This document shows positions 10,266-58,756 of a DNA stretch of 64,000 bases, in pieces (the stretch's first letter is position 1; the number at the start of each line of letters is the position of its first letter). The translations under genes and the position numbers were made by a program. This DNA comes from Oikopleura dioica. Taxonomy: Eukaryota; Animalia; Chordata. The stretch covers positions 8,990,001-9,054,000 of the forward strand of contig OU015568.1 of the NCBI GenBank assembly GCA_907165135.1, given 5' to 3'. The notes below the pieces were generated by a model, which saw nothing but the letters and a program-made list of their open reading frames with translations, had not been told where the DNA came from and did no database searches.

Positions 10266-13200
10266 ATGGACTGGGCTGAGTTAGTGTCCCATATTCGCCA
10301 GAAAAACAGCCGCCACAGAGTTCAAATCGACTCGCGCTGCTTTGACGGGTAAGCCAAAAATAATCCTTCCTAAATCAAACATGAATATTTTATTTTTCCC
10401 TAGCTTGAAAAATGTCGAAATCGGAAAAGAAAGCGCCGTTCTGGCGGCTTCTTTTGCACTCTATTCAAACGCCGGCCTCCGCCAAGATCAATTTGACTTT
10501 TTGCTGAAAATCCTGAACACGAATTGGGGCGATTATGCTGCAATTGGAGTTGTCTATGGACTATCTTCTAAGTCCTTCGATGGGAAACAGTTCATTGACG
10601 TTTCTTTCAACGGAACCAAGAAATATCCTGAGAAAACAAAAGAAGAAAATCCGGATTTCTCGATTCACAGGAAATTGGCTTCCGAATTCTAAAAAATAAT
10701 AAGCTAGATTTATAAAATGTATTATTTAAAATGCCTATAAAAGTCTGAAAGTCTACCGCCGATGGACCGATGTGTCTGAGCCCCATCTCCTTGCATTTTC
10801 GACAGCCCTCATTGAAAAGCTTTCAACTCCTCGAATCAACGCCCTCGTCTATTCTTCCAAATTCCTGACCTACACTTCCAAGACCTTACCGAGCGAGAGG
10901 CAGAATGAAATGTTCACCCACGTCATCAACGCCTTGTCTAAAATGCTCATCGACAACTCGAACATCAACGAAATGAAGAATCTCGGGAAGAGCTTCCTCA
11001 CTGACTTTTGCAACGATGAAGCGTCGATTGAAGGCGTGGCGAAAATGTGCGCCGCTGCGGAAAATGCGGAATACGAAGCAAAGATCTTTGTCATCAGGGT
11101 TAGTGGAGAAACAATCGTGCAGAACCATCATCTTCGTGAGAAAATCCTGCCAATTGTCACTCCCCTCGCTATCGCCACTCTCGCTGAGTGCGACGACGAC
11201 GATGAATCGGATATCCTCCGCGTTCTCGACGAAATCGACAGTTTGAGCATCCAAGAGTTGAAAAACCTCCGCCAGAGCATCGTCAATCTCCGCTTCCGTC
11301 GGAGCGTCTCCTTCAACATCACGCTGATGGAAATCTTCCAGAAACACACTTCTAAATTCCCTCTCGGTCAGTTTTGGAAGGAATTCGGGATCTATGACGA
11401 GTCTGATGAGCGATTTTCCTTCAATATCACCCTCATCATCGACGATTTCATCAAATCTCTCAACGATCCTACCAAGTATGAGTGGCTCCAACAGTTTTTC
11501 AATCTGGCCATCGATGGAATTCTTGCCGGCGCAAAGCTCGACAAAACCGCGCAAATCATGAACATCCTCGCCCTCATGACACTGGAAATCAAAAAGATTC
11601 CCGAAAACAACCTGGCTTCGACTGTCCTCCGAATTTTCGAGAAACTATCCTCGAGTTCGACCTCGATCGTCAATTCTTTCGAAATCCTGAATCTCTTCGA
11701 CTTCATCCTTTCAGAAGAAGACGAAGAAAAGAAGATCCAGAAGTCCTTGTTTCATAAAATCATGGCCGCACGAGTCGATGTATTCGTTGAAAACAAGGTT
11801 CATCTTGAAGAAGAAACTTTTGAAGAACTCAAAGGAATATCAAAAGAAGGATCGACCTTCAAAAAGCTCTCGTACCGTCAAAAGACTGTATGACCGACGA
11901 GATCTTACAGGCCCAGCTAATTTCCATGATCGAGACTGACAAAGACGAAAAGTTCCGGGATTTATCCGCATCAATGCTGAAAAACATCAATCCAGAAAAC
12001 ATCATCCTTTTGTTGCGACTTTCGAGAAAATTGAACATTCAGCAATACCATCCGGTCCTGGAGATATTTGCCAATGATCAAGGGGGAATCGAGACCATCG
12101 ACAGTGTCCTCGACTTCGCCAGTTCGCAAATTGGGAAAGGAGATATTGCCAGTTGGGACGTGCAAACCGCTACGACTCTTGGGTTTTACTTAGCCATGGT
12201 GAAGAATCAATTGAAAAAAGATGATTCCGGGGAGTTTGCGAAAAAAGTCATCGACTTTGGCGCCGCAGTGATAAATAATTACATCGAAAACATCGTTCTC
12301 TTCGCGCAAAAGACGATCGACACTGCTGACGACAACCCATTGCAACTACTTTGCTCGAAATACTTCGATGAACAAGCTAAAGTCTCCTGCCGAACAAAGA
12401 TGTACGAGGCGCAGCAGTGGGGAAGCTACAAAGATACGAAGAACATCTTTAAATTCGACAAATTTGGTCTCGATGGGCTTCTCGCACTCATCAAGAATAC
12501 CGAAAATGTCAAGAAAGATAACGTCATCTCAATTGGCGGAGTTGGTGGTCTTTTTGCGCTGGAAACAGCGGCCGAAATGTTCGAGGAAAAATACAACACA
12601 GAAAAAATCGTCAAAATCACCTTCCAGATGTTTTGCGATTTAATTACAGCATCAATTGAGAAGCTCCAAAAAATCGAGCAGCTGAAAACTGTCAGTGCGC
12701 AAAACATCGACGCCTTGGTGATCGCCGGAGTAAAGCTTGCAAACTCGTCGATCTTCAACAACCTCGAAAAAATTCCTTTGAAGGAATTCACCACTAATGA
12801 AAAAGTAGAATCGTTGCTGAACGAACTGCTTCTTGGCGAACTCATGAAGCTAATCGATTTGAGCCTTGATGAAGGAAGTGTGACGAGATCGTTCATTATC
12901 GGTTCGCATGAAGGAATCCGACTTGTGCTGGATCAGCGGCTTCTTCCTAATCAAACTCTCGTGAACGAGGAAACTGTTCTCAAGATCTTTCAGTACATTG
13001 TCTTGATCACGAACGAATCCTACGGATTAACATGCCAGTTTTTGAAAATTCTCTTGACTCACCGATCTGCTGATGTCACAAAAACTAAGATGAAGCTTCT
13101 CACCGACGAGTTATTGAATCTTGTTCGAGCAGAATCCGCCACCCAAACGGATGTTTCCGAGCTTTTAGAAATTATCAACGCCAAATGCGAACGAACGCTG

Positions 13201-16200
13201 TTAGAAAGCATCGCCACAGAGCTGATCGCGCAAATCAGTAAAGGAGCAACTGCGCATGATCTCAAACAACTTGTTGAAATCGCGAATTTAGTACAAGCTG
13301 ACAAAGAAGAAAATGAATCATTTGGAGAGGGAGAGACTAGTCTAGGATATGGGCATGTCCACATTCTCCGAGAGATTGAAAAAGTCCTGGAAGAGCTCCC
13401 GAAAACGATCGATAAGAATGAAAAGCTCTACCCAGCGTTTGAGTACCTAACTCAACTGTCGATTTATTTATCGATGGACGATGAATCGCGTTGGATGTCT
13501 GATGTCGTGAGTCAATTCACCCGAGGGAAGCAAGACACACCCCGGAGCGAGAAAGCAGCGAAAGATGCGAAACTGTGCACTTATACTCACACGCAGCGCG
13601 AGTTCCAGAGCCAGCATTGGTACCACTGTCACAGTTGCAATATGGTTGACAGCGTTGGTGTTTGTTCTACATGCGCTGTCGTTTGTCATGAGGGGCACAA
13701 CCTGAGTTATGCGAAGCATTCATCATTCTTTTGTGATTGCGGAGCGCAAGACAGAACTCCTGGTCGTCGATCATGCATTGCTCTGACTCCAAGATCCCCA
13801 GGCGTCACTCCTGGCAAAAAGCAGCCCGAGACGGGAACATCGGCAGGTATTTTCAACGCTTCGGAAGAAATTACGCTCAGTATCAACATAACGAATCCAC
13901 TCATCAGAGAGAGGTGCAAAGATGCTCTTACAAAGATGATACCGAAAATCGAAGCTGTCTGCGTCTCACTAGAATCATCCTCAAAAGATGAAGAAACTGC
14001 GGAAGAGAAGGCAAGAGCGCTGCTTGATAGATTCCAAAAGACAACAAAAGCAACAGTGAATAACTATATCAAGGCCGATTTCCAGACCAATCAAGGAGCG
14101 CTGGAAAACGTCAAACCCTCTCTATCTCCTGACGGAAACGAGGCTATAAGAAAAGTGCTTCTTGAGAATTCAATTCACAGAAATTTTGTCGGAGTTCTTG
14201 AAGAAAACCGTGAGAAATACATTGTCGTTCTCCAGGACAAGAATAAAATGTCACTCCTCGCACTTTCCACTCTTCTTTCTCGAAAATCCAACAGCTCCAC
14301 GAACGCTGTCTCGAGGCAGAGTCATTATACAGCTTCATTTACAGTTATGAACGTTCTACCAGCTCCGTACGGTCGATTCATCCTACAGAGTGGAATTCGC
14401 GAAGCAATCATCCACCGAATAAATAATGGTACTTTTGGGGAGAAAATTTCCCTCCATTTGAATACTCCGAGCAATGATTTTATCACTCAAACTCGTTGGA
14501 TTCCTCAACTTCCCGGTTATTTGGCGATCTCAAGCACTAGAAATGTAAAAATCTTCAATTTCTTAGAAGATCCTATGTGTCCACTTTTCAATTTCAAAGT
14601 GAGCGACCAAATTCACGACTTTACGTATTTTTTCATTGGGACCGAACTTCATCTACTAGTCCTTGTTTTGTCAAAAGATGGAGAGAGCGTCTTCATCAAA
14701 AAAGTCACCGACGAAGATAAAGCATCCAAGCATGGAGAAGTGACAATCTCCGAAAAAGTTCAGATAAGAAACGATGTCTTAGTTCCCAAAAACGATCTGC
14801 AGATTTGCTCCAACGGCACGATTTTCTATTCCTTTCAAACTGGAGTTCTTTTCCTTGCATACACGATCGGAAGCACTAAGAAAGGCACCCACAAGAGGCA
14901 AGTTTTCTTCGCTCTTAGCTGCCCTGTTTTCGAAAACAATTGTTGGTCAGTGTCAACAGTCGCTAAAATGCCAGAACTATCCGCTCTGATGAAAGAAATG
15001 CTAACACAAAAAAGATCTTTCGACAAGGACGCGAAGAGCAAGGATGCAGAGGGCTTGATCAAGCTCGCTCCGAATTTTTCTTCTGGGAATACGTCGAGCG
15101 CAAAATACGTTCGTAATCTCCGCGAGGCTACTGGTCATCCTGGTTTGCTCACTGCTTCATACGGCCCACACAGTTTTGCAATTACGTTTACAGAGAGCGA
15201 AATCAACGTCGAATTTCTTGGGGATGTTCGACCAATTCTGGACATTTCCGCGATCGTTCACAACTTTCGCGGTACAGAGAAACCAACGTCGTCGATTCTT
15301 GCTATCGCAGAAGACGGCGCTCTTCGAGGATGGACAATCAACCCAGCGCAAGCAGAGAAAGGCGAGTACTGGAAAAACATGGCTCTTCAAAATACACAAG
15401 TCCCTGTAATCCAAGAAACGAGCAAAGAATACCCGCCCACCTTCTTGGAAGATTTTGAAATCATCACAGACTCAGAGCTCGAGTACCAGTCAAACCAGCT
15501 GCAGCGAGTTTACAATCGCCAGCGTCTTCGTCGATGTCTCGAGCCGGGAAATAACACCAACTCGCATTACGTGACATGGAAGGGTCCCTTCACTCTTTCG
15601 GTGAAAACAGCGAAGATCGTTCGTGGCCTGAGACTTCACTTTGGAGATAATGATGCTCAATCGGCTCCTCATTCCGTCGAGCTCACTCAGTTCAACCGAA
15701 TTGTCACCGTTGGGGACGTCACTCAAGCTCGTTGGTTTGACATTATTCTGACTCCAGAAGAAGCTCTCAATTTGGACGGAAAAATCACTCTAGAGTTCGT
15801 CCCATCTCCAAGTGCTGATCGAAAAATCGTCGTCGACGCAATCAGACTCTACAAAACCAGCCGCAGGGCGATTATGAACGAGAAAAAAACGAAACGACAC
15901 CAAACTCGCCAAGAAGTCGTCCCTCTTCAAGGGACCTCGAGACGATTCTGACTCCCTTCGATGGGCAGCGGTAAAGAGCTACGTATCAGGAGCAAATTTG
16001 GTTACGAAAGCATCTCAGCGCTCGCATTATCTCGAAAAAACTTGGAAATTCGTCGATCCGTACACTGCATCGCCAGTAATGATTCAGCAGTTCAAGGAAA
16101 TCTTGCCCGCAGTCGACTTTGACATGTACTGTGATATTCAGTTAGCTAAAGCGCTCCCTTCGTTCAAAAAATTCGACTGGATGATTTTGCAAACCCTGAT

Positions 16201-19200
16201 TGATCAAATTTACGTCGTCGCGGAAAACCGTCCGGCAAACTTCCGCGGTTATTTCACCAATACCCAGTCTTTGAACGCGTTCAAGCTCATTGCGAAGACC
16301 CTCCACGATCTCATCGAATCCTCTGGTTCTTGCTACAAACCAGATGTTTACCCTCAATGCACGAATTTCCGCGATATAACGAGGAAAATTGTGTTTATTC
16401 TGAGCATGGTGAGTCTTCTTGATCCAAGTCAGCTTGAGAATGCGACGAAATTCTTTGACTACTCATCTGAATCACCTGAAATTGTTCTTGGGATGAAAGA
16501 TGCGATTCTTGAAGCGTTGAAATTTGAGCTTCCTGACTCGGGAGGTGCTTTGACGTCGAAAAACAGCGCAGAAATCATCTGCGTTGAAGACACAAATGAA
16601 GATGGCGATGATGATACTGTTGTCGCCGAAGAAGGGATAATGGATATCGACAATGATGATGAAGACGACGACGATGATGACGACGAAGATGACGACGAAG
16701 ATGAAGACGAGGACGATTATGAAACGGGGACGATTGACGGCGAAGATCATGAGGACGATGATGATGAAGATGATGACAACGATGTAGATATGGAGGAAGA
16801 AGATTTCTCTAGTGAAATCCTCGAAGGCGGCGGAGAAGGATTCCAGAATGACGGAATTGTGGTCGAAATCCCTGGTGACATCAGAGGCATCGATCTTGAC
16901 CGACTTCTCCAGGACAACGACTCCTCAATCGCAGATCTTGCCCTTGCACTATCTATTCAGGCGGATGAACGGCGTCCTGATCCACCAATTAGCCGGCTAC
17001 CCATTCCAACTGTGCCGGACACAATCGAAAGCGACAAAGAACAAGACGAAAATATCCCGAGCACACCTGCTGAAGTAAAAACATCTCCATCAGAAGACCC
17101 AATCTTCTCGAAAGAGCGACAAAGACAGTTCGCTATCAAGCTGATTTCCCAAATCGTTGCTGATGACAAGAATGACGTTCGAATCCAATACCAATTGATT
17201 CTCGCTGCACTGTCGAAATTGGACGTTAATGAGCCAGATGAACTCGATGTGATTGAAAGCGTCATTTCGAGCCTTGTGCTAAAAATCAAGGAGACTAAAT
17301 CATTGCTTCATATTATTATTCTCTCCGAATTCCTCAGATTCAACAATGATTTTACTTCCATCATCTCTCAGCAAATCAGCAATCATGGCATTATCGATAT
17401 TTTCACCAGCTACATTGGAGACAATGTCTCAGTTACGCCAAAGAACTCACAATCTACGACTAAAAAATCATCAGAGCAAGAAAAAGCAGATCAGAAGCCC
17501 TTCATTATTCCAAAAGAATACTCAGCAAACAACAAACTTGGCACTGTCAGCGCCATGCTACGTCTTCTTGAGGCGTTAAAAGAAAGAGATGCTCTTCTTC
17601 AAGTTCCACCGCTGCTGCTTGATCTAGTCATAAAAGTCATCGTCCGCGAGGAATCGTCAAAGTGGTTCATTAATGTCTGCAAGCGTTTTGGTCTTTGCTT
17701 TACGCAGTCGGCTGAAAAGTTCAAAGCTCGCCTCGATCGGGAGAGACTGATCAAGAGCTTCGAAAAACTCCAGGTTTACGCGAACAATGACTCTTTAGAT
17801 CTATCCTACAGTCAGCTCTCTGAGCTTTACGAAGAACTCAAGTCAATTGTTGAGATTGCTCAAAAGGTACTGATGATTTTCGATTCCCCCAACTTACTAA
17901 TTTCTTCCTAGCGACCAGGATCATGGCAAAAATTTGTGGAAAATCGTCCTCATATAATCGAGCTTATCCTCAATCTCCCGACGAACATAGAATGCTGCAA
18001 CAAGGACGTCATCAAGCTCCTTGAAGTGATCGTATCTCCAGTTCAAATTGGCACTCAAAAGTCTCGAAAACAATCCGAGTCGATTTGCGAAAAACGTAAG
18101 CGCTCCAAATCCCAGGGAAGCGCCAAAAATACAGGCGAAAACTTTGTGGACAAATTTCTCGACAGTAAGCGTCCATCGAGCCTCATTTCTCATCCCTTGT
18201 TCGTTCGAAAAAATCTCTTCTCCGAGTCGGAAAGCGTCCGATGGGCAATGCACTCGCTGATGAAAACGCTGTTTGCGGATTGCTCTGATGCTAAAAAGCC
18301 GGTACTCGTCAAGTTTTTGTGGACAATGTTCAACTCTTCGATTCGGTTTGGTCAGCGAGCCATCCAGTACACCGATCTCCTCGGTTTCTTCACGATTAAA
18401 TCTAATATCCCGGCTGAAACGCTCAAGGGATACGGCGATCTTGTTGCAAGAACTTTGAATTCGCAGTTGACTCAACTATCAACACATTCGAATTCGCTAC
18501 TTTACTCAAGACTTGCGGAGCAGCTTTCTTTCGGCGGATTTTATCTTGAATCCCAGCTTTGTCTCTCTTGCAACACTCAGAACGAGGAGTTCACATCATC
18601 AACGATCACGGGCCTCAAGGGTGATACAAAGTACACAACTACCGCTCAGATTTATAAACTCAAAGCCGGCCAGGAAATCCAGCGGGTGAGTATGAAGCTG
18701 ACCGATGTGAAGCGAACGCGACATGTGAAATCAATGACTTTGTATTACACGACAAGAACAAGCATCCCGATTATCGAGCTGAAGAACTCACCACAACTCT
18801 GGTTGAAAGCGAAGACAATCCAACTCTCGCAGGGACAGTCAGAAGTCACTTTCAATCTTCCAGTTTCAATCAAGGCGAACTTCTTGATCATCGAGTTTTC
18901 ATCTTTCTACGACGAGAGCTACTCGATCCCTGAAACGCTTCCTTGCCCTCGATGTTCGAACAATGTTCACACAGATCCAGGAATCTGTGGCAACTGCGGC
19001 GAGAATGTTTTCCAGTGTCACAAATGTCGAATGATCAATTACGACGAGCGGGACCCTTACATTTGTACCCAGTGCGGATTCTGTCGTTATGCCAAGTTCA
19101 GTCTTTCAATGTCATCAAGAAACTGCACCATCGCCGATCCAGTTGAAACAGAAGACGAGCGAAAGCGAGCAGAAGTAGAACTCAAAAAGCAGCTTGTGAA

Positions 19201-22200
19201 AGCTGACGCAACCTGGGAAAAACTAATTGTCCAGCGACGTGAGCTAGAGGACTCTTGCTACGAAATCGAAAACGGCGGCAAAGAGGATTGTAAAAAAGAA
19301 GCAAAGCCCAAGGCTCAGCCACTAGTTACAAAATACAATGAGTGCAAGACAAGTCATAACGATATCACATCAATGATTCGAGCAGCAAATGCTTGCCGAG
19401 AAACACTAGCAGATTATGAGAGAAGATCAAACTTGAATGCAGGGCTGGTAAATTAGCGCACTATTTTCTCTCGAAGAAAAAAAAATTAGTGCACTAATTT
19501 TTTTTAGAGACATTTTCGCGTCTTTCGCGCCTTAAGTGCACTAAAATGACACTAATTTTTCCTCTTGAGGAAATTAGTGACTTTTCGAGAGCTGATCTAC
19601 ACTAAAGACGCGAAAAAAGAGGCTCTTTTTCATCATCCAATGGGCTCTTCCCGGATGATAGCTTCATGGAAGACGATTTTTGTCAGGGAAGAATTTCTTC
19701 AAACTGAAACTGCTAGATATTTAAAAATCAATGCATCATAAATACCACAATGTATGACACAAATTAATTTTTAAAAAATCGTTTTCAGTCCCCCACCAAA
19801 TTAAGTCAGCTAAGGTTATCGATCATCCTCTTTCACCTGAGCGTATCAGTTCTTTGAAACAAGTACTTTTCAGTTTTGCGAAAAAAAATATATATTTCCA
19901 GTGTCCTTATTTGGTAACAAAAAAGTTGAAAGGAATAAAAGTCAACTTTTGTTGGAAATTCTTTTTGTCGAATATTTTAATGATGAGCTAAGATAAGCTT
20001 TGCTAGGGAGGTCTTCTCCCTAATTTTTTTTATCGCAGGGCCATCCGCAGCTGGATCTTCCTGCTTTTCTTCATTTTTTGCCTTTCTTCTCCTTGTCATC
20101 GTCCAACAACTTCTCATCGCTGTCCTCAACAGTCTCTGAAGCTGGAGCAGCCTTGACTGATACGTTCTACTTTCCGGGAACGGTCGAAATTTTTGGTAAC
20201 CCATTACCAATTTTCGGTTTTCGATTATCAATTTATATTTATTTTTTCGCCAAGTTAATGAATAAAACACCCCACAAGTTTTCTATTTTACAGGCGCGGA
20301 GCGCACACTCGCTCTTTGAATGAAAAAAATCGACACTATTTTGGCGAATTTGGTAATGCATTACCAAAATTTGTTATGGGTTATCAATTGGTAATGAGTC
20401 CGACCTTTTCCCCTACTTTCGTGGTCTACGAGCTCTTCTCAGTATCTTTATATAATTCTTTATTCACAGAATCACATATATTTGATAATTTAGAAGGGAG
20501 GTCTCCTCCCAAACTCACGCTTACTTGATAACTGCTAATGAAGAACTCCTCCCAAAGTTTTTTTTTTAGTTTTCTAGGATAAAGCAATGCTATATTTTAA
20601 GAGTAAAATATATCGGGAGTAAATCTGCTTCTAGATCTCCCTTATGATTTTGTTAATTATGAATTATATTAACAATCTGCACAAGGCTGCTCCTGCTACA
20701 GACTTTTGAGGACACCGAAGATTAGTCGAACGACGACAACAAGAAGATTGACAAGAAAGGGAAAATGCAGGAAGAACAAGCTTCAATAAAAAATTAATTA
20801 CTTAAAGAGTCTAAGCTTATCATTCAAATCCAGCACAGAAAGATTGTTTCTTTATATTTATAAAGAAAATTAACAAATGGATTGATAAAGTCTTTTTTGA
20901 CTATATATTAAAATTCACGCCCTCGATTACCCAATCCACTTTATTGAAACTCTTTGAAATTCTAATATTAACGAAGTTTGAAATTCTCAAACTTACGTAT
21001 TCTTCAGAATTAAAGAGCCCGCGCTCATTGGCGGGCCAATCAGCAGCCCTTATTTTCGACACTTTTCGAGACACACGCGAAAGAGACGCGAAAGTCACTA
21101 AAGTCTCGACAAAATAAATTCGCGCACTAATTTTAGTGCACTTAAAATTTTCGACAGATTTTAGGACGCGAATTTACCAGCCCTGCTTGAATGCAGTGAA
21201 ATCAACGCCGAAACTAACTGGGGAAAATGACTCAATTTCGATGTCAAATTGCTACGGCTGTGCTGTGAATGGAGCAGAGAACAATCTCACTCTCGTCCGA
21301 GCTCTATGTCAGATAACATCTGTTCGCGAAGCTCTTATCGCTGACGGCGCCGTGGAAAAGCTTCTCTCATCTCCGCCAAACCTTGGAAGCTCGAATTTAC
21401 GAAAGCTCATCCGAAGAGCAATCTGTCGACTTGTTCGCGGCTCGAAGGAAGCCTCAAAAGAACTAGGAGAACGACTCAAAGAAAAGATCATCTCTCTCGC
21501 CAAGCAAAATCAATCAATTGCACGGCTGGATGTTCTTCTTCGAGAAGATCTTGAGCTCCTAAAGCAATCGCTGAAATATCGAGACTCCGGATGGGAATAT
21601 CGAATCAAAGCGGCCATGGCCATCTTCCTCGAAGCGTCAGAACTCTGTGACAATGTTTCATCTGGAACGACAATCGTGAATGGAATTTTACTCCCTTGTC
21701 TAGCAATTCTCAAGAAGCAAACCAGCAGCCAAGAAAACAACAAGGAGAGCCGAACACCATCTCCTTATGACGTCAATTTCCGAAAATGGGCAGATGGCGA
21801 TCCTGATCATCAATACGAAACCCGCACAACTGCTAGAATCGACGAGGAAGAGGAACCATCATTAAAATCTGTTCCAGAGTCGTACTGGCTGCCAAGACTT
21901 ATGTTCTGCAAATGGTCTCAAGAAGCTAGAATTCAAGCTTGTAATGTTGTCAGCAATTTGGCCAAGAACAGGAAGACCGAAATCATCGATCTAATGGTGA
22001 CTTACTTTAAATATGTCAATGAAGCCGGAGAATATGCTGTTGAGTATCTTGGATTGCTCAGAACTCTGCTTGTAAAAGAACAAGAACTTGCGCCTGGGCT
22101 TTCTTCTTTGTTACTGAAAGGACTTGGCGAGCTTTTGATGTCTCAAATCAATGCGTTGATGAAACAAGAACTTGAATATTCTCAGATGACCACGATTTCT

Positions 22201-25200
22201 TCTAGCACTGACCTTCGAGTTGGGAAAACCCTCGACGCGATTGTCCTACTGCTCTACATCATCATTGATAAATCGAAAGATCTGCCCTTCAAGATGATCA
22301 AGCCAATCCTGCGAGGCTATCTCAGTCTCTGCAGAGTCTCTCTTTACGAACCAAAGCGATTGACGACGCCCAAGATGGTCTTCTCAAGCTCCTTGAGACA
22401 CTGACCTCTGGAGGCGAAGATATTGCACGTGACTTTGTCAAGATTTGCTTCAAAACTCTTTCTCACTTTTCTAAGGATGATTTCCAGGCGAGTCAGTTTG
22501 TTTTCGAGCGACTCTGTAATATCATCCGTCCTGAATCAACCGAGGACGAGTCCTTCCGAGTTCAAATCGACAAAGATCCTCTGCAAGAAGAATTTCTACC
22601 AGGTCGAATGGTCAACAATCCTTATCCAAGTTCGGCCGTTGGAGAAACAATCCGCGATTTGAAGAACAAGATCTGCCGTGATACAGAGCTCATCGCGATG
22701 GTCGACGACGATACGAGCTTGGAGCTATTAGTTTCGAACAAAATCGTCAAACTTGACCTGGCCGTCGCAGATGTCTACAAAAAGATATGGCTTCAAAACC
22801 ACGAGACCAATGTGCCAATGCGAGTCATCTATCGTATGCGAGGATTGATGGGCGAAGCGACAGAAGAATTCGTCGAGACGCTACCGGAAGACGATCAAAA
22901 TGAAGAAGAGATCTTCAAACGAGCATCTTATCTTGCTGTCGATAATGGATTGGAGACGGTTCTCGATAAACTCGAATCCATCCGATCTCTTAATTCTCGA
23001 TCACGACCGCTTCTTGGCGCTGGATTGAAATTGCTCGGATTCTGCGTCCATCTTCGCGTTTGCCGAGACGCACTCGCTGAGAACTCCTCCGCTTCCATGT
23101 TGAACATCATGCTTCAACTGTTGAACATCTGCATCGAAGCAAAAGAAGCAAAACTCGTCGAGGACATCCTAGCAATCATGAATCGAGTTTTAGCTGAAGC
23201 AGCAACCCACGGACAGGAAACAGAAACAGGCCACAAACACGAACTGACGAAGCTTCTTAAGGCTATCGACTCCGAGTTTGTTCAGTCGCGGCAAAATATC
23301 GTCATGTCACTGATGGAAATGATCCCGTTCTTATCATTCGGAGATGAGCAACTCATGGAGCAGCTGATTAACCATTTCGATAGCGTCCTTTCCAACTTAT
23401 CTAGCTTTGACGAGTCTCAAGATGAACAACACAAGATCTACCTCGAGTGCTTCTGTGACATCCTCAAAGGTCTCAAGCCCGATAACCCGGGTGGCAAGCA
23501 TTTGAAGGATCTCATGTACGCTAGAAATTTGCCTCGACAGGCAATCGATTATCTGCGAGCTAAAACACCTTCGGATAAGAATTACGCATCTGATGAATGG
23601 AAAGATCTTCTTGAACGACCCGTTCTTCCATTTATTCTTCGGATTTTAGCTGGACTCGCTACTGGGCATCCTGAATGCCAGAAGCTTATTGGAGAAATGG
23701 TAATTCCTGAGTTGCATCGATTGGAACAAGTCGCTGCTGGCGGAATCGGTGAGTCCTTACAACTCTACTTTTTCTAATAATAATTCAGGTACTCTGGCGG
23801 AGGAAGCTCTCGAAGCTCTCAGAGACAATAGTGATGTTTTCAAGCGCGTCTCTGAAGCCCGCCGGGCCACTCGCAAGGAAAAAGCTAAAGTCGGCAAATC
23901 GCATCGTATGAAAACACTTCTCAAACTCGGTATGGCGGAGAATACCGACGGAACCATCAAAGCTGACGACCGCAAATCCGAAAAAATGAAGCTCGAACAA
24001 GCAGAAGACGGGCCTCTTTGTGTCATCTGCAAAGAAGGATGCCAGTTTGAACCGAAGAAAATCATGTCGATCTACTGTTTCTGCAAGAGAGCTACTGTCG
24101 AGCCGTTTGAAGCGAATTCGAGGAAGACCGTCGGCTTTGAGACAGTGTCCAGCTTCAATTTGATCCACAACGAGTGTCACAAAAAAGCGGTTGTTGCTAA
24201 ACGATCCAGGGATGAGTGGGAGACTTCTTTCCTTCATAACAACAGGTGATCAACAGAAATTTAACTTTAATTAAAACTATTTTAGTACCCGGTGCAACGC
24301 GCTCTTGCCACTGTGGGGCCCTGAAGTCAACGAGTCTGATTTCTCAACCCAAATGGCGAAATTCAACGAGTCTGTTCGCGACGCTACTGGCGTATCTCCC
24401 GATGTCACCTGGCTTATTCACAACATCAAATTGATGCTGCACCGATTTTCAACGAATGGCAAATTCTACCTTGATGCGGGCGGCGGAGGACCGGAGAGTA
24501 ACATGAAATTCTTGCCGCACTTGATTCACTACATTTTGTACACGACTAACACCCTCAAAACTCAGGTAAAAACAAAAATAATTAACTGCTGCTAAAAAGA
24601 TTTTCTTTTCAAGAGCTCTTTGAAAACGCCGATTCAAACCTTCCTGGACGATTTCAACGTTAATTCATCTTGGGCCGTCTCTGGCTACTTCTACAAAGCT
24701 ACATCAGCCCTTATCGTGTTTAGTAAAGAGGTGTGTTTGTTTCTCACTTTTCATTGATATAAAAAATTCTATTAAAGGAATGGATTAAATGCAGAGTCGA
24801 CTTTTTGAAGAAAATGATCATTTGTACCCACATGCGTGAAGTCTCAATTAACCCGAAAAAGGGAGTCACCGAGGCAGAACGAAAGGAACTCCCCTTTGAA
24901 AAGTACAAGCCTACGATTTTGTTCTGGTTCCTAATTGATCAAATCTTGGACAAGCTTTTTGACGAGCAGGCAATTTCTGACAGGTGACCAATCAGAACAC
25001 GCCGCGGCAGTTTTAAACATTGATTTTTAGCGCCGGAGAGGAATACACAGAGAAACTGCAAATGTTCATCCGAAAGAACACTGTTTCTCTTCAGAAGTCC
25101 TGCGAAAAGTTGGTGAAGACATTCAACGAAGAATTCATTGTCGTGGATTCCCTGGAGGAATTCATTGATGTGGCGAGTCTTTACAGCGTAATTGAGCCTT

Positions 25201-55860: not shown

Positions 55861-58756
55861 TCAGTCAAGAAGTCCCTCATCAGGTTCATCTGGTAAAATG
55901 GCGTTCATTGCTTCGTGAGGATTTTCTGGGTGCGTTGGGTAGTTGGAACCGTGAAGTTCAGGTTCATAAGTCACCAATACAACGCTTGTCTAGAAACAAA
56001 TTTTAGCGTAATTGTTACGTAACAGCTGATTATTCAATAATCAACTGCGAAAGTTTATTACCCAGACGTGGAGCATGATCATGTATACGAGCACGAGGAG
56101 TCTGACTGTTGGATACCGCTTCAAAAGAACACCAATTCGGATTGATAGTTTATCGAGAGCTCCAACAGCGCGTTTAATTTTCCCGACGGCGTCGTCGGTA
56201 GAGTCGGTGATGAGGGATTCGGCGTCGATTTCCACGTGACCGCGTTTTCGAACGACTGGCGAACTGTTTTGTGTGTGATTCTATGGATGTTATTTAACTA
56301 ATTGACAAAAGGAAATGGTCGCTGTAATCAAGAAAGAGTACTTACGGATCGCATTCTCGTCCTTTCCAACTCCAGCGAAAGAGCTGATTTATCGGACGAA
56401 AGTGCCTCAATTGTCGTTTGTTTCTCAATCAGCGTATCTGTCAGCGCTCTCAGTCTCTTTTCCAGCTCTGCGTTTGACGCGTGCGACATGACTTTGCTCC
56501 TCAGTCGGCCGATCTGAATTGCCAATTTTCATCGAGAAAAATGTTATTTCAACCGAAAAAGGAAATTAAAGGTGAAATATAGAGCGATGTTCTTTTATAA
56601 AGGAGTCCCTGGCGCGAGAAAACGCGTGATGGTTAAGTCACAGCCATGATTTGTCCAACAAAAAATGAGGTGTTATGTAACTTGCTCTATCCTAGAGACA
56701 TGTTACGATACGCCCATTTTTTGTGTTATAGTAAGTTACGCGGCTACATAATGAGCTCCTTTAATACTATTAAAACTTGATGAAATCAACGAGGATATTA
56801 TATTGTAATTTGATAGAAACGCACCTCACGATCTTTTTCAGCCGTCAGTCTGCTCAGCTCAAGTCTAGCTGCGTCATTCTCGCGCTGGCTCTGCCCTAGT
56901 TCTAGCCTCAGCCGCGCTAGCTCTGGCGTAACTTCATTCAGCCTCTGCTGACTGTGCTCGAAATTGACTTCCATCTCGCTATAGCGCGTCACTAGAATTC
57001 CTAATTAACACATTTACAAAGTGATGAGATTCTTACTGGATTGTTCAAAGTCCTCAGCTGCTTGAGACTCAGCTTGCTGGAGATCTGCGCGTAGGTCTTG
57101 AATCTGATGATATTTTTACTTCTTTGGGCATCGGAAAAAGAACTTACTTGAGTTGCGAATGCTCTGTTTTCATCCTTTAGCAAATCATTTTCATGTTGAA
57201 GCTCTTCTAGTTTTACGCAGCGAGCTGAAATAAAACATAATTACTTTTAAAAATCATTTCTTGTTACCCTGGTTTTCAGAAGAAACTTCCGATTCTTCTT
57301 TTTGCGCATTTGGATCAGAATTTTTCAGCGATTCGATGAGCTTCTTCTTCGATTGAAGAATTCGCTGCGACTTGACCTTGTATTCTTCAAATTCGACTTG
57401 GATCCGTTCCATGCCAGTTTTGAACGTTCTCGCCTGTGATTGAGCCTCCGAACTTTTAGTTCGTTCTTGCTGGAGGAGAATTTGAGCTTTGGCAAGAGCT
57501 TCTGAAAGCGTTGACTTTTCGATTTCCCATTGAGTCTCCCGCTCGTCGATTTCCTTGGCGCGGGTTTCTTTTTCTTTCATCGCTACTGCTTCAAAGAAGA
57601 TTTATTTTTAGATAAGATCAGGGAATATGCATGTAACATGCAGCATGTTTCACCATGCGAGATCGGAACAGCTGAGTAGGTTCGAATTCTCATATTACCA
57701 GCTGATACGGTGAATAAGTAACTCGAACAACGATAGTCGTTAACTTAGAGCTCAAAATGATTCTTTATAAATGACTCTGAAATTCAGAGTCTGAATCTTG
57801 ATTTAGACCTAGTCCTCTCCGAACTCAATACGGTAAACTAACAGAATAATAAATCCCTTTCCTAACTCAGCATCTTTTTCATCAATTTCACTTTGTCTTC
57901 TCCTCTGCAACTCAGAATTCGTCAGAGTCAGTTCCCTTTCAGTCTTCCTCTGAACCAGGGGTGGATATTTTGAAATCAACCATTATTCCATTTTATTCTA
58001 GAGCAAATTTGGCTTGATAAATCGGCTTGAAATTTCGCATGTTATCATCTTTTATATATTCGAATCAGTCCTGAAAATTTCAGACTGATTCATCAAGCCA
58101 GTTTTGCTCTGGAAAAAATGGAATAATGAAATGATTTCAAATTATCCACCCCTGCTCTGAACATCCATGAGCCTTGAAATCTCCATGTTCAACGAGTTCA
58201 TTTCCTGCCGCAAAAGTTTGTTTTCCAACTGAAGGTCCATCGGTTCATCTCGTCTTTCTCCAACAACGGATCCAGGGGCAGAGACGACTTCGAATTCGCT
58301 ATCGTTGCCAAAGTTTGTTCCCGGGGTTGTTCTACCACTAGGCGGCGTTGGAGGCTTCCGGAGAAGATTCATTCCGGATTCGGAAGATTCATCATCGGAA
58401 TTTTTATCTTTTTTCACCGGGCGGCGAGGGACAGGAGACATCCTAGGTGAACCGGTCAGACGAGAGGGAGAACTGGTCAATTCTCGGTCAAGCCGGAGAT
58501 CCCTCGAGCTGTTTCTTGAATGCTTCGGGCTTGCGGTCCTGACCGGTCCGAACGAGCGATTCATAGATGTCATTGAAGCGGACCGGTCCATCCCACCAGA
58601 GAGTGGAGGAAAATCAGCATCGGACTTTTCATTTTCTCGCTTTTCCTTTATCTCCTCGATTTTTTTCTCCGCGGTTTCAATCGCTGCACCCGCTTGCTTA
58701 TCCAAATTATCCAGGAGTGCCTCACCCTGCTTGGCCAGATTTGAAAGCCATGACAT
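55861..58756 (-). CDS. GOLGA5: Golgin-84
   Basis: N-terminus MSWLSNLAKQGEALLDNLDKQA, long coiled coil, LEKRLRALTDTLIEKQTTIEALSS.KSAL..ELER, C-terminal TM RYPTVRLLVLVYMIMLHVWV then VLVTYEPELH. Confidence 0.9.

Follow-up and report, generated by a model that had tools for sequence, protein, structure and literature searches.

A polymorphic hAT-like transposon in a coding exon of Oikopleura dioica UBR4 whose ends carry candidate splice sites

The interrupted exon of UBR4

The stretch analysed here is 64,000 nucleotides (nt) of Oikopleura dioica DNA (assembly GCA_907165135.1, contig OU015568.1, positions 8,990,001 to 9,054,000, forward strand). It is called the window below, and positions are counted from its first letter. 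Our subject is a transposon that interrupts a coding exon of the UBR4 gene and whose ends contain a candidate pair of splice sites. UBR4 is coded on the + strand, from about 10.7 to 25 kb of the window. In Pfam searches, consecutive exons of this strand matched zf-UBR (the UBR box, PF02207), the UBR4 domain (PF24079), and E3_UbLigase_R4 (PF13764, 3e-115). The order of the three, with E3_UbLigase_R4 at the C-terminus and all on one strand, identifies the gene as UBR4. Full-length UBR4 proteins of 4.9-5.5 thousand amino acids are collinear with the window in tblastn. The clear introns of the gene are of the GT-AG type and are 40-46 nt long (17866-17911, 23749-23788, and 24246-24285).

Direct reading and a repeat search show that positions 19440-21185 are a transposon insertion of 1746 nt. 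The preliminary description of this locus had proposed a hAT-like element with terminal inverted repeats (TIRs) and an 8-bp target site duplication (TSD) in the middle of a UBR4 coding exon. Sequence, repeat search, and Pfam all confirm this anatomy. The features are as follows; a slash in a motif marks a cut site.

17912-19439, + strand: upstream part of the interrupted UBR4 exon, stop-free and ending ...YERRSNLN + G; PF24079 at residues 397-505; homologues align
19432-19439, unstranded: left TSD, CTTGAATG (sequence and repeat search); one copy in empty-site contigs
19440-21185, unstranded: probable non-autonomous hAT-like transposon, 1746 nt, 36% GC; no protein-family match in its open reading frames; depth 15-60x that of the flanks
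19440-19454, + strand: left TIR, CAGGGCTGGTAAATT, perfect over 15 nt and imperfect to 19475 (repeat search)
19443-19444, + strand: GG, candidate donor of a scarless GG-AG intron (19443-21196, 1754 nt) whose removal would restore the empty-site protein exactly
19448-19449, + strand: GT of a consensus-like candidate 5' splice site in the left TIR, CTG/GTAAAT, resembling the window donors GTAAG, GTAAT, and GTGAG
19449-19547, unstranded: left subterminal repeats with AAATTAGYGCACTA-type motifs and a local palindrome at 19478-19505 (repeat search)
19454-19456, + strand: in-frame TAG on retention of the element; the open stretch 17912-19453 ends ...NLNAGLVN
20049-20155, unstranded: arm 1 of an internal inverted duplication (partner 20682-20782, about 75% identity; repeat search; opposite-strand joints in other copies)
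20682-20782, unstranded: arm 2 of the internal inverted duplication (repeat search)
21084-21151, unstranded: right subterminal repeats, complementary to the left ones (repeat search)
21171-21185, - strand: right TIR, reverse complement of the left TIR (repeat search)
21179-21180, + strand: AG of a candidate 3' splice site in the right TIR, AATTTACCAG/CCCTG (sequence, in silico enumeration)
21186-21193, unstranded: right TSD, CTTGAATG (sequence and repeat search)
21194-22401, + strand: downstream part of the UBR4 exon (AVKSTPKLTG...CYGCAVNGAEN...), from homologue alignment; 75% nucleotide identity to contig L001 from 21223

Upstream of the element, the reading frame ends ...ADYERRSNLN. If 19440-21193 (1754 nt; the element and one copy of the TSD) is deleted, the result is a stop-free exon of 912 codons that reads ...RRSNLNAVKSTPKLTG..., so the earlier claim that such a removal restores the frame holds. 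Retention of the element brings a stop five codons in (...NLNAGLVN*), which would cost the C-terminal third of UBR4, including the ligase domain. The insertion site falls in a linker that varies greatly in length and separates a conserved ...EL..YD... block from the CYGCA block. The alignment of five distant UBR4 proteins runs across the site, in the indel-rich linker. Small insertions in this linker, including one of seven extra residues, should be tolerable.

A relative with 49% identity (L002, a contig of ENA ERZ27288795) has a 57-nt GT-AG intron of its own in UBR4, at 2784-2841 of the contig. It interrupts the same linker, about 17 codons downstream of where the insertion site would fall. 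Since the two positions differ, intron positions in the UBR4 linker are lineage-specific.

Structure and class of the element

The left end of the element reads CAGGGCTGGTAAATT and the right end is its exact reverse complement. These two ends are the only perfect matches to CAGGGCTGGTAAATT in the window; a TIR-like match with 3 mismatches at 58140 is at chance level (1.4 matches expected). The TIR is perfect over 15 nt, and an imperfect inverted repeat reaches 37 nt (81%). Inward of both TIRs are subterminal inverted and direct repeats with TTAGTGCAC-type motifs. The TSD is 8 bp; the direct repeat reaches 11 nt only through the CAG with which the element starts and the host sequence continues. 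The GC content of the element is 36%, against 42% in the window. A Pfam search of the seven open reading frames of at least 60 codons in the element gave no matches, and the element is therefore considered non-autonomous. A second copy or an autonomous partner was not found within the window.

Ends of hAT elements follow the pattern YARNG, and those of Ac/Ds start with CAGGGATGAAA. The CAGGG start of the present element is an instance of this pattern. Mobilisation of hAT elements depends on a transposase with a DDE/RNase-H fold and a C-terminal hAT dimerisation domain, supplied by an autonomous partner with the same ends. Judged by its TSD, TIR, and subterminal repeats, the element fits best as a non-autonomous hAT-like DNA transposon. 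An 8-bp TSD of the hAT type is present on both sides and as a single copy at the empty site. The 15-nt TIR is within the short range of hAT TIRs (about 10-25 nt) and is accompanied by subterminal motifs. Evidence of mobility comes from the multi-copy family and from insertion polymorphism. A Mutator-like reading, with an 11-bp TSD (CTTGAATGCAG) and GGCTGG ends, is possible from one copy but is disfavoured by the CAGGG end and the subterminal repeats. An assembly artefact is ruled out by the perfect TSD, the perfect TIR, and the exact, footprint-free empty site in other DNA. The combination of TSD, TIR, and exact empty site is far beyond chance.

Polymorphism, copy number, and age of the insertion

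Logan contigs of two public DNA runs (X1 and X5) were aligned to window positions 17600-22600. In both runs, contig joints skip exactly 1754 nt, from 19431/19432 to 21186/21187, with 10-11 letters fitting both sides. The empty site anticipated in the preliminary description is thus present in other DNA. X1, from organism A, has one empty-site contig with a depth of 108, compared with about 140 for collapsed flanks. X5, which is labelled organism B and whose contigs are mostly 95-100% identical to the window, has two distinct empty-site contigs with depths of 51 and 50. Nearby depth in X5 is about 47-53 per haplotype, and therefore both X5 haplotypes appear to be empty. X1 is not the sequenced individual, since 6 of 1397 flanking positions differ between its sequence and the window. 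In a sample of window words, no public run held more than 60%; the metatranscriptome runs X9 and X11 held 7-9%.

The empty sites have no footprint, which marks them as pre-insertion alleles. Excision is ruled out by this absence together with the uninterrupted sister lineage. That lineage is represented by the protein P0170 (90% amino acid identity), which comes from the ENA metagenome contig L001 (75% nucleotide identity), with uninterrupted ...YERRSNLAAVKSEMKL...; across the site, the sequence reads ...YERRSNLAAVKS... with no insertion. The insertion is young and polymorphic, and other chromosomes of the same lineage, as well as the sister lineage, keep the exon intact. L001 lacks 10 coding nt relative to window 21376-21385 (at L001:631, ...SSP/GSSNLRK...); the frame shifts there, and the gene caller splits the open reading frame. 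An assembly error, a tiny intron, and a real indel are the candidates for this gap.

In two DNA runs, the element has 15-60 times the depth of its flanks, which makes the family multi-copy. The termini are deeper than the middle. Contig joints reveal internal-deletion and rearranged derivatives of the family; this pattern and the depth are what an active non-autonomous family usually looks like. The window copy stands apart from all or almost all contigs of the family at 20 or more listed positions, which corresponds to a private divergence of about 1%.

Other copies of the family are themselves variable. In some, positions 19988, 20026, and 20052 are joined to 20805, 20694, and 20778 on opposite strands, which indicates that the internal inverted duplication has been rearranged in these copies (foldback-like variants). 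Several others have internal deletions of 246-463 nt.

Candidate splice sites at the element ends

All G[TACG]...AG pairs situated no further than about 90 nt from the element ends were enumerated for an open frame. Twelve combinations were in frame and stop-free. Only one of these in silico candidates is a GT-AG pair, formed by GT at 19448 and AG at 21180. With this pair, the mRNA would retain 21 nt, read as AGLPCLN: 8 nt from the left TIR, 5 nt from the right one, and the second of the two 8-bp TSD copies. The predicted junction of the +21-nt product is ...AATGCAGGGCTG/CCCTGCTTGAATGCAG.... The 13-nt core that derives from the element contains no stop in any of the three phases, whichever its orientation. 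Introners keep the frame by means of splice sites in the element or the TSD. In silico, the GT/AG route does so with +21 nt and a GG/AG route with +0 nt.

The GG/AG route is the one favoured in the preliminary description, which had proposed that an intron with a GG donor at 19443 and an AG acceptor at 21196 restores the original mRNA without a scar. The 11-nt repeat allows 12 equivalent cut registers, and among these only 19443-21196 ends with AG; it begins with GG. Donors were compared by eye with those of the clearly real introns of the window. A splice-site matrix derived ab initio from the window was contaminated by antisense and chance reading-frame pairs and was unusable. With the local donors (GTAAG, GTAAT, GTGAG, and GTACT), CAG/GGCTGG shares only G+1 and G+5, and it lacks their A+3/A+4.

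The ends of the element can also pair as RNA. The predicted energy of the paired ends is -98.8 kcal/mol, compared with -65.8 +/- 4.5 for shuffled sequences (z about -7). In the predicted fold, a perfect 16-bp helix holds the two cut sites no more than 2-3 bp apart. According to this model, pairing could help to juxtapose the splice sites or could hinder their recognition.

Non-GT donors and frame changes in UBR4

In the Okinawa assembly of O. dioica, about 11% of introns are non-canonical and the median intron length is 49 nt (PMC8008620); the short introns of UBR4 fit such a genome. Across reports, non-GT-AG introns make up about 10-12% and are chiefly GA-AG (PMC8008620, PMC7072748). The earlier statement that other introns of the window need non-GT donors did not hold at the sites where it could be tested: the clear UBR4 introns are GT-AG, and one apparent exception is an indel. 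This exception is the frame change at 22330-22346, where 17 nt stand for six homologous residues (GYLSL-RKLVVQ-RTK vs GYLSL-CRV.SL-RTK). The site has no room for an intron and is a 1-nt deletion in a TCTCTCT run, likely an assembly error or a frameshift allele. Against the window, the X1 contig that covers 21358-22600 shows a single gap. Two further frame changes, at about 11824-11890 and 15878-15948, are overlapping open frames between long UBR4 stretches and contain no AT-rich, intron-like sequence. GT-AG solutions are implausible at both sites (at 11.85 kb they would be 23 or 104 nt long, and at 15.9 kb 58-61 nt, with poor ends). These two changes are either non-canonical introns or indels, and one of them adjoins an A7 run.

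Searches of RNA, protein, and metagenome data

Two bulk RNA-seq runs with the same species label (X18 and X19; raw reads, about 1.5-1.8 Gb each) were searched at 90% identity or higher. On 5 kb of UBR4 exons (17600-22600), they gave 2 and 3 reads, none of them near the element and too few to bear on splicing either way. The runs are probably from a diverged cryptic lineage. This is suspected because L001, from the sister lineage, is only 75% identical in DNA. Near-zero reads on a conserved gene indicate that the species label spans lineages too diverged for cross-mapping, which matters for the reuse of public Oikopleura RNA data.

In word-indexed protein searches and an exhaustive search of representatives, a near-identical junction-spanning open reading frame of this lineage was not found. 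The nearest proteins were P0170 (90%) and P0085 (87%), both from relatives. Scans of JGI metagenomes for the junction, scarless or scarred (gap 0-30), and for the TIR gave no matches. A scarless junction in RNA from ungenotyped animals is not proof of splicing, as it could come from the empty allele, which exists as DNA. Only the +21 junction, or scarless reads from homozygous carriers, count as evidence of splicing.

Explanations for the insertion allele

The explanation that we favour, with a confidence a little short of even, is that the allele is tolerated through removal of the element as an ordinary GT-AG intron. A young hAT-type element of a multi-copy family has inserted into the middle of a UBR4 exon, at a variable linker. 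The left TIR would then provide the donor CTG/GTAAAT (19448) and the right TIR the acceptor TTTACCAG/ (21180). The right TIR can supply an acceptor because the ends of the element are palindromic, and the same would apply in the opposite orientation. The mRNA would carry the 21-nt scar, and UBR4 would gain the seven residues in frame and free of stops. Pairing of the element ends in RNA may bring the splice sites together. Under this explanation, which we hold tentatively, the insertion would be of the introner type with a codon scar, and not a scarless GG-AG intron. A broader form of the proposal extends to the family. If its ends encode both GT and AG, any exonic insertion, in either orientation or phase, could become a spliceable intron with a fixed, stop-free 21-nt scar. 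We regard this extension as possible, somewhat below an even chance.

Several observations weigh against removal as a GT-AG intron. The two RNA runs contain no read near the element, and neither the protein collections nor the JGI metagenomes yielded a junction-spanning protein or contig of this lineage. The insertion is seen only in the window, and all other haplotype reads are empty, as would be the case for a deleterious recessive allele. When combined with the GT donor, the AGs at 21136, 21157, and 21164 (the last a better-looking TTTTAG) all shift the frame. Because of these competing upstream AGs, the choice of acceptor is not guaranteed. The intron would be AT-rich and 1.7 kb long, about 35 times the usual local length, with AATAAA motifs inside it. 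The perfect terminal stem might mask the splice sites just as readily as bring them together. Finally, an in-frame length has a one-in-three probability by chance, and several site combinations were examined.

Several of the same observations suit a plain loss-of-function or strongly hypomorphic allele, an alternative that we consider nearly as likely. The element would be retained or mis-spliced and the mRNA truncated or degraded, while the insertion would be recent and heterozygous and its haplotype the one kept by the assembler. In most organisms, a transposon in an exon makes a null allele. Retention meets the stop at 19454-19456, the competing AGs lead to frameshifts, and in both DNA runs the depth of the empty site is about that of a full single copy, with no other carrier seen. 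Heterozygosity of 3.6% is reported for the reference animal of the presumed source assembly, in which haplotypes were merged (PMC8008620). What a broken allele does not account for is that the ends carry a consensus-like GT and an AG whose use, in either orientation, would restore the frame and leave a 21-nt scar free of stops. The location in a tolerant linker also argues against it, as do the transposon-derived introns for which the genus and its relatives are known. Of the suggestion in the preliminary description that an intron birth had been caught in the act, the recency of the insertion and its removability in principle stand; the allele is not separable from a disrupted one, and empty-site DNA exists.

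The remaining two explanations also involve splicing. Leaky, mixed processing, as in maize Ds/Ds1, would use several donor and acceptor pairs at the ends and produce both in-frame and out-of-frame mRNAs from a partially functional allele. Examples would be GC 19439 with AG 21180, which adds 12 nt, and GT 19448 with AG 21164, which shifts the frame. The twelve in-frame combinations near the ends are consistent with this, and the Ds/Ds1 elements of the hAT superfamily are described as offering several terminal donors and acceptors that are alternatively spliced from exons (PMC5395267). Most of the present sites, however, are non-canonical and weak, and we consider this outcome unlikely. Scarless removal of 19443-21196 is less likely still, to the point of being improbable. 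Its arithmetic is exact, as the preliminary description had stated, it is the sole register ending with AG, and about 11-12% of O. dioica introns are non-GT-AG (PMC8008620, PMC7072748). Yet the documented excess of non-GT donors is mainly GA-AG, and CAG/GGCTGG lacks the GTAA/GTGA core of the window introns. A strong GT donor is located in the TIR 5 nt downstream, the 60 nt before the proposed acceptor contain four other AGs (one of them 16 nt upstream), and the 'non-GT introns' of UBR4 are at least partly indels. Scarless reads, moreover, would not be distinguishable from the empty allele, which is present as DNA.

Relation to known transposon-derived introns

Introns made by transposons occur in Micromonas and Aureococcus, and the mechanism was reportedly first shown by Huff in 2016. 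A survey of introners in 3,325 genomes described a family in Aureococcus with both splice sites in the element; its copies add 12 nt, consisting of 4 nt and the 8-bp TSD (Gozashti 2022, PMC9860276, Fig. 2F). Like the window element, the Aureococcus introners are non-autonomous DNA transposons with an 8-bp TSD that land in exons, with both splice sites within the element. They keep a few element bases and a TSD copy in frame, 12 nt compared with the 21 nt predicted here, and they show presence/absence polymorphism between isolates. They differ in that their splicing is documented, their copies number hundreds to thousands, and their lengths are tens to hundreds of nt. The window element is represented by one 1.7-kb copy in the window and tens of copy-equivalents by depth. 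It resides in an animal host, has hAT-type ends, and is a predicted intron in silico.

The same survey listed three or more introner families in a TARA metagenome-assembled genome (MAG) of Oikopleura sp. (Gozashti 2022, PMC9860276, supplementary table). These share with the window element the genus, the occurrence as repeated families, and a GC content of about 37%, and their donors are mostly GT. In contrast, they are annotated introns of about 200 nt from an Arctic MAG, with TSD and TIR status marked as unknown; no hAT ends or 21-nt scar are described for them. The O. dioica assembly OdB3 was screened in the survey and is not listed as introner-bearing (PMC9860276).

By end type, the maize elements Ds/Ds1 (Wessler 1991, cited in PMC5395267) belong to the same superfamily as the window element. 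Their splice sites cluster at the termini, and most of the element is removed from exons, leaving small changes. Their splicing is alternative and mostly imprecise, giving mutant or leaky alleles, and Ds provides donors only. A symmetric GT/AG pair with a fixed in-frame scar is not described for them. Another appendicularian, Fritillaria borealis (Henriet et al. 2019, in PMC11282704; PMC13326754), has lineage-specific introns derived from miniature inverted-repeat transposable elements with TIRs, and a permissive spliceosome has been proposed for it. Its introns are mostly AG-AC/AG-AT and dependent on diverged U2AF paralogues. The clear introns of the window, by contrast, are GT-AG, and the best route for the window element would be canonical, unlike the Fritillaria introns. 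In the literature searched, we found no description of hAT-derived introns or of this TIR in O. dioica.

Significance for intron turnover in Oikopleura

Where new spliceosomal introns come from is a long-standing question; introners answer it for algae and protists above all, and scarcely for animals. Among animals, Oikopleura is the classic example of massive intron turnover, the cause of which is unknown. Transposon-made introns, including those with codon scars, are already known. If the allele is simply broken, it is an ordinary transposon polymorphism and a warning about disrupted essential genes in single-haplotype assemblies of highly heterozygous animals. If the element is spliced, it would be a further case of a transposon-made intron, notable for still segregating in a culturable chordate. 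A segregating exonic hAT element with canonical splice sites would allow a direct test of intron birth in such an animal. Splicing by means of palindromic ends, if true, would provide a concrete source for the rapid intron turnover of this lineage.

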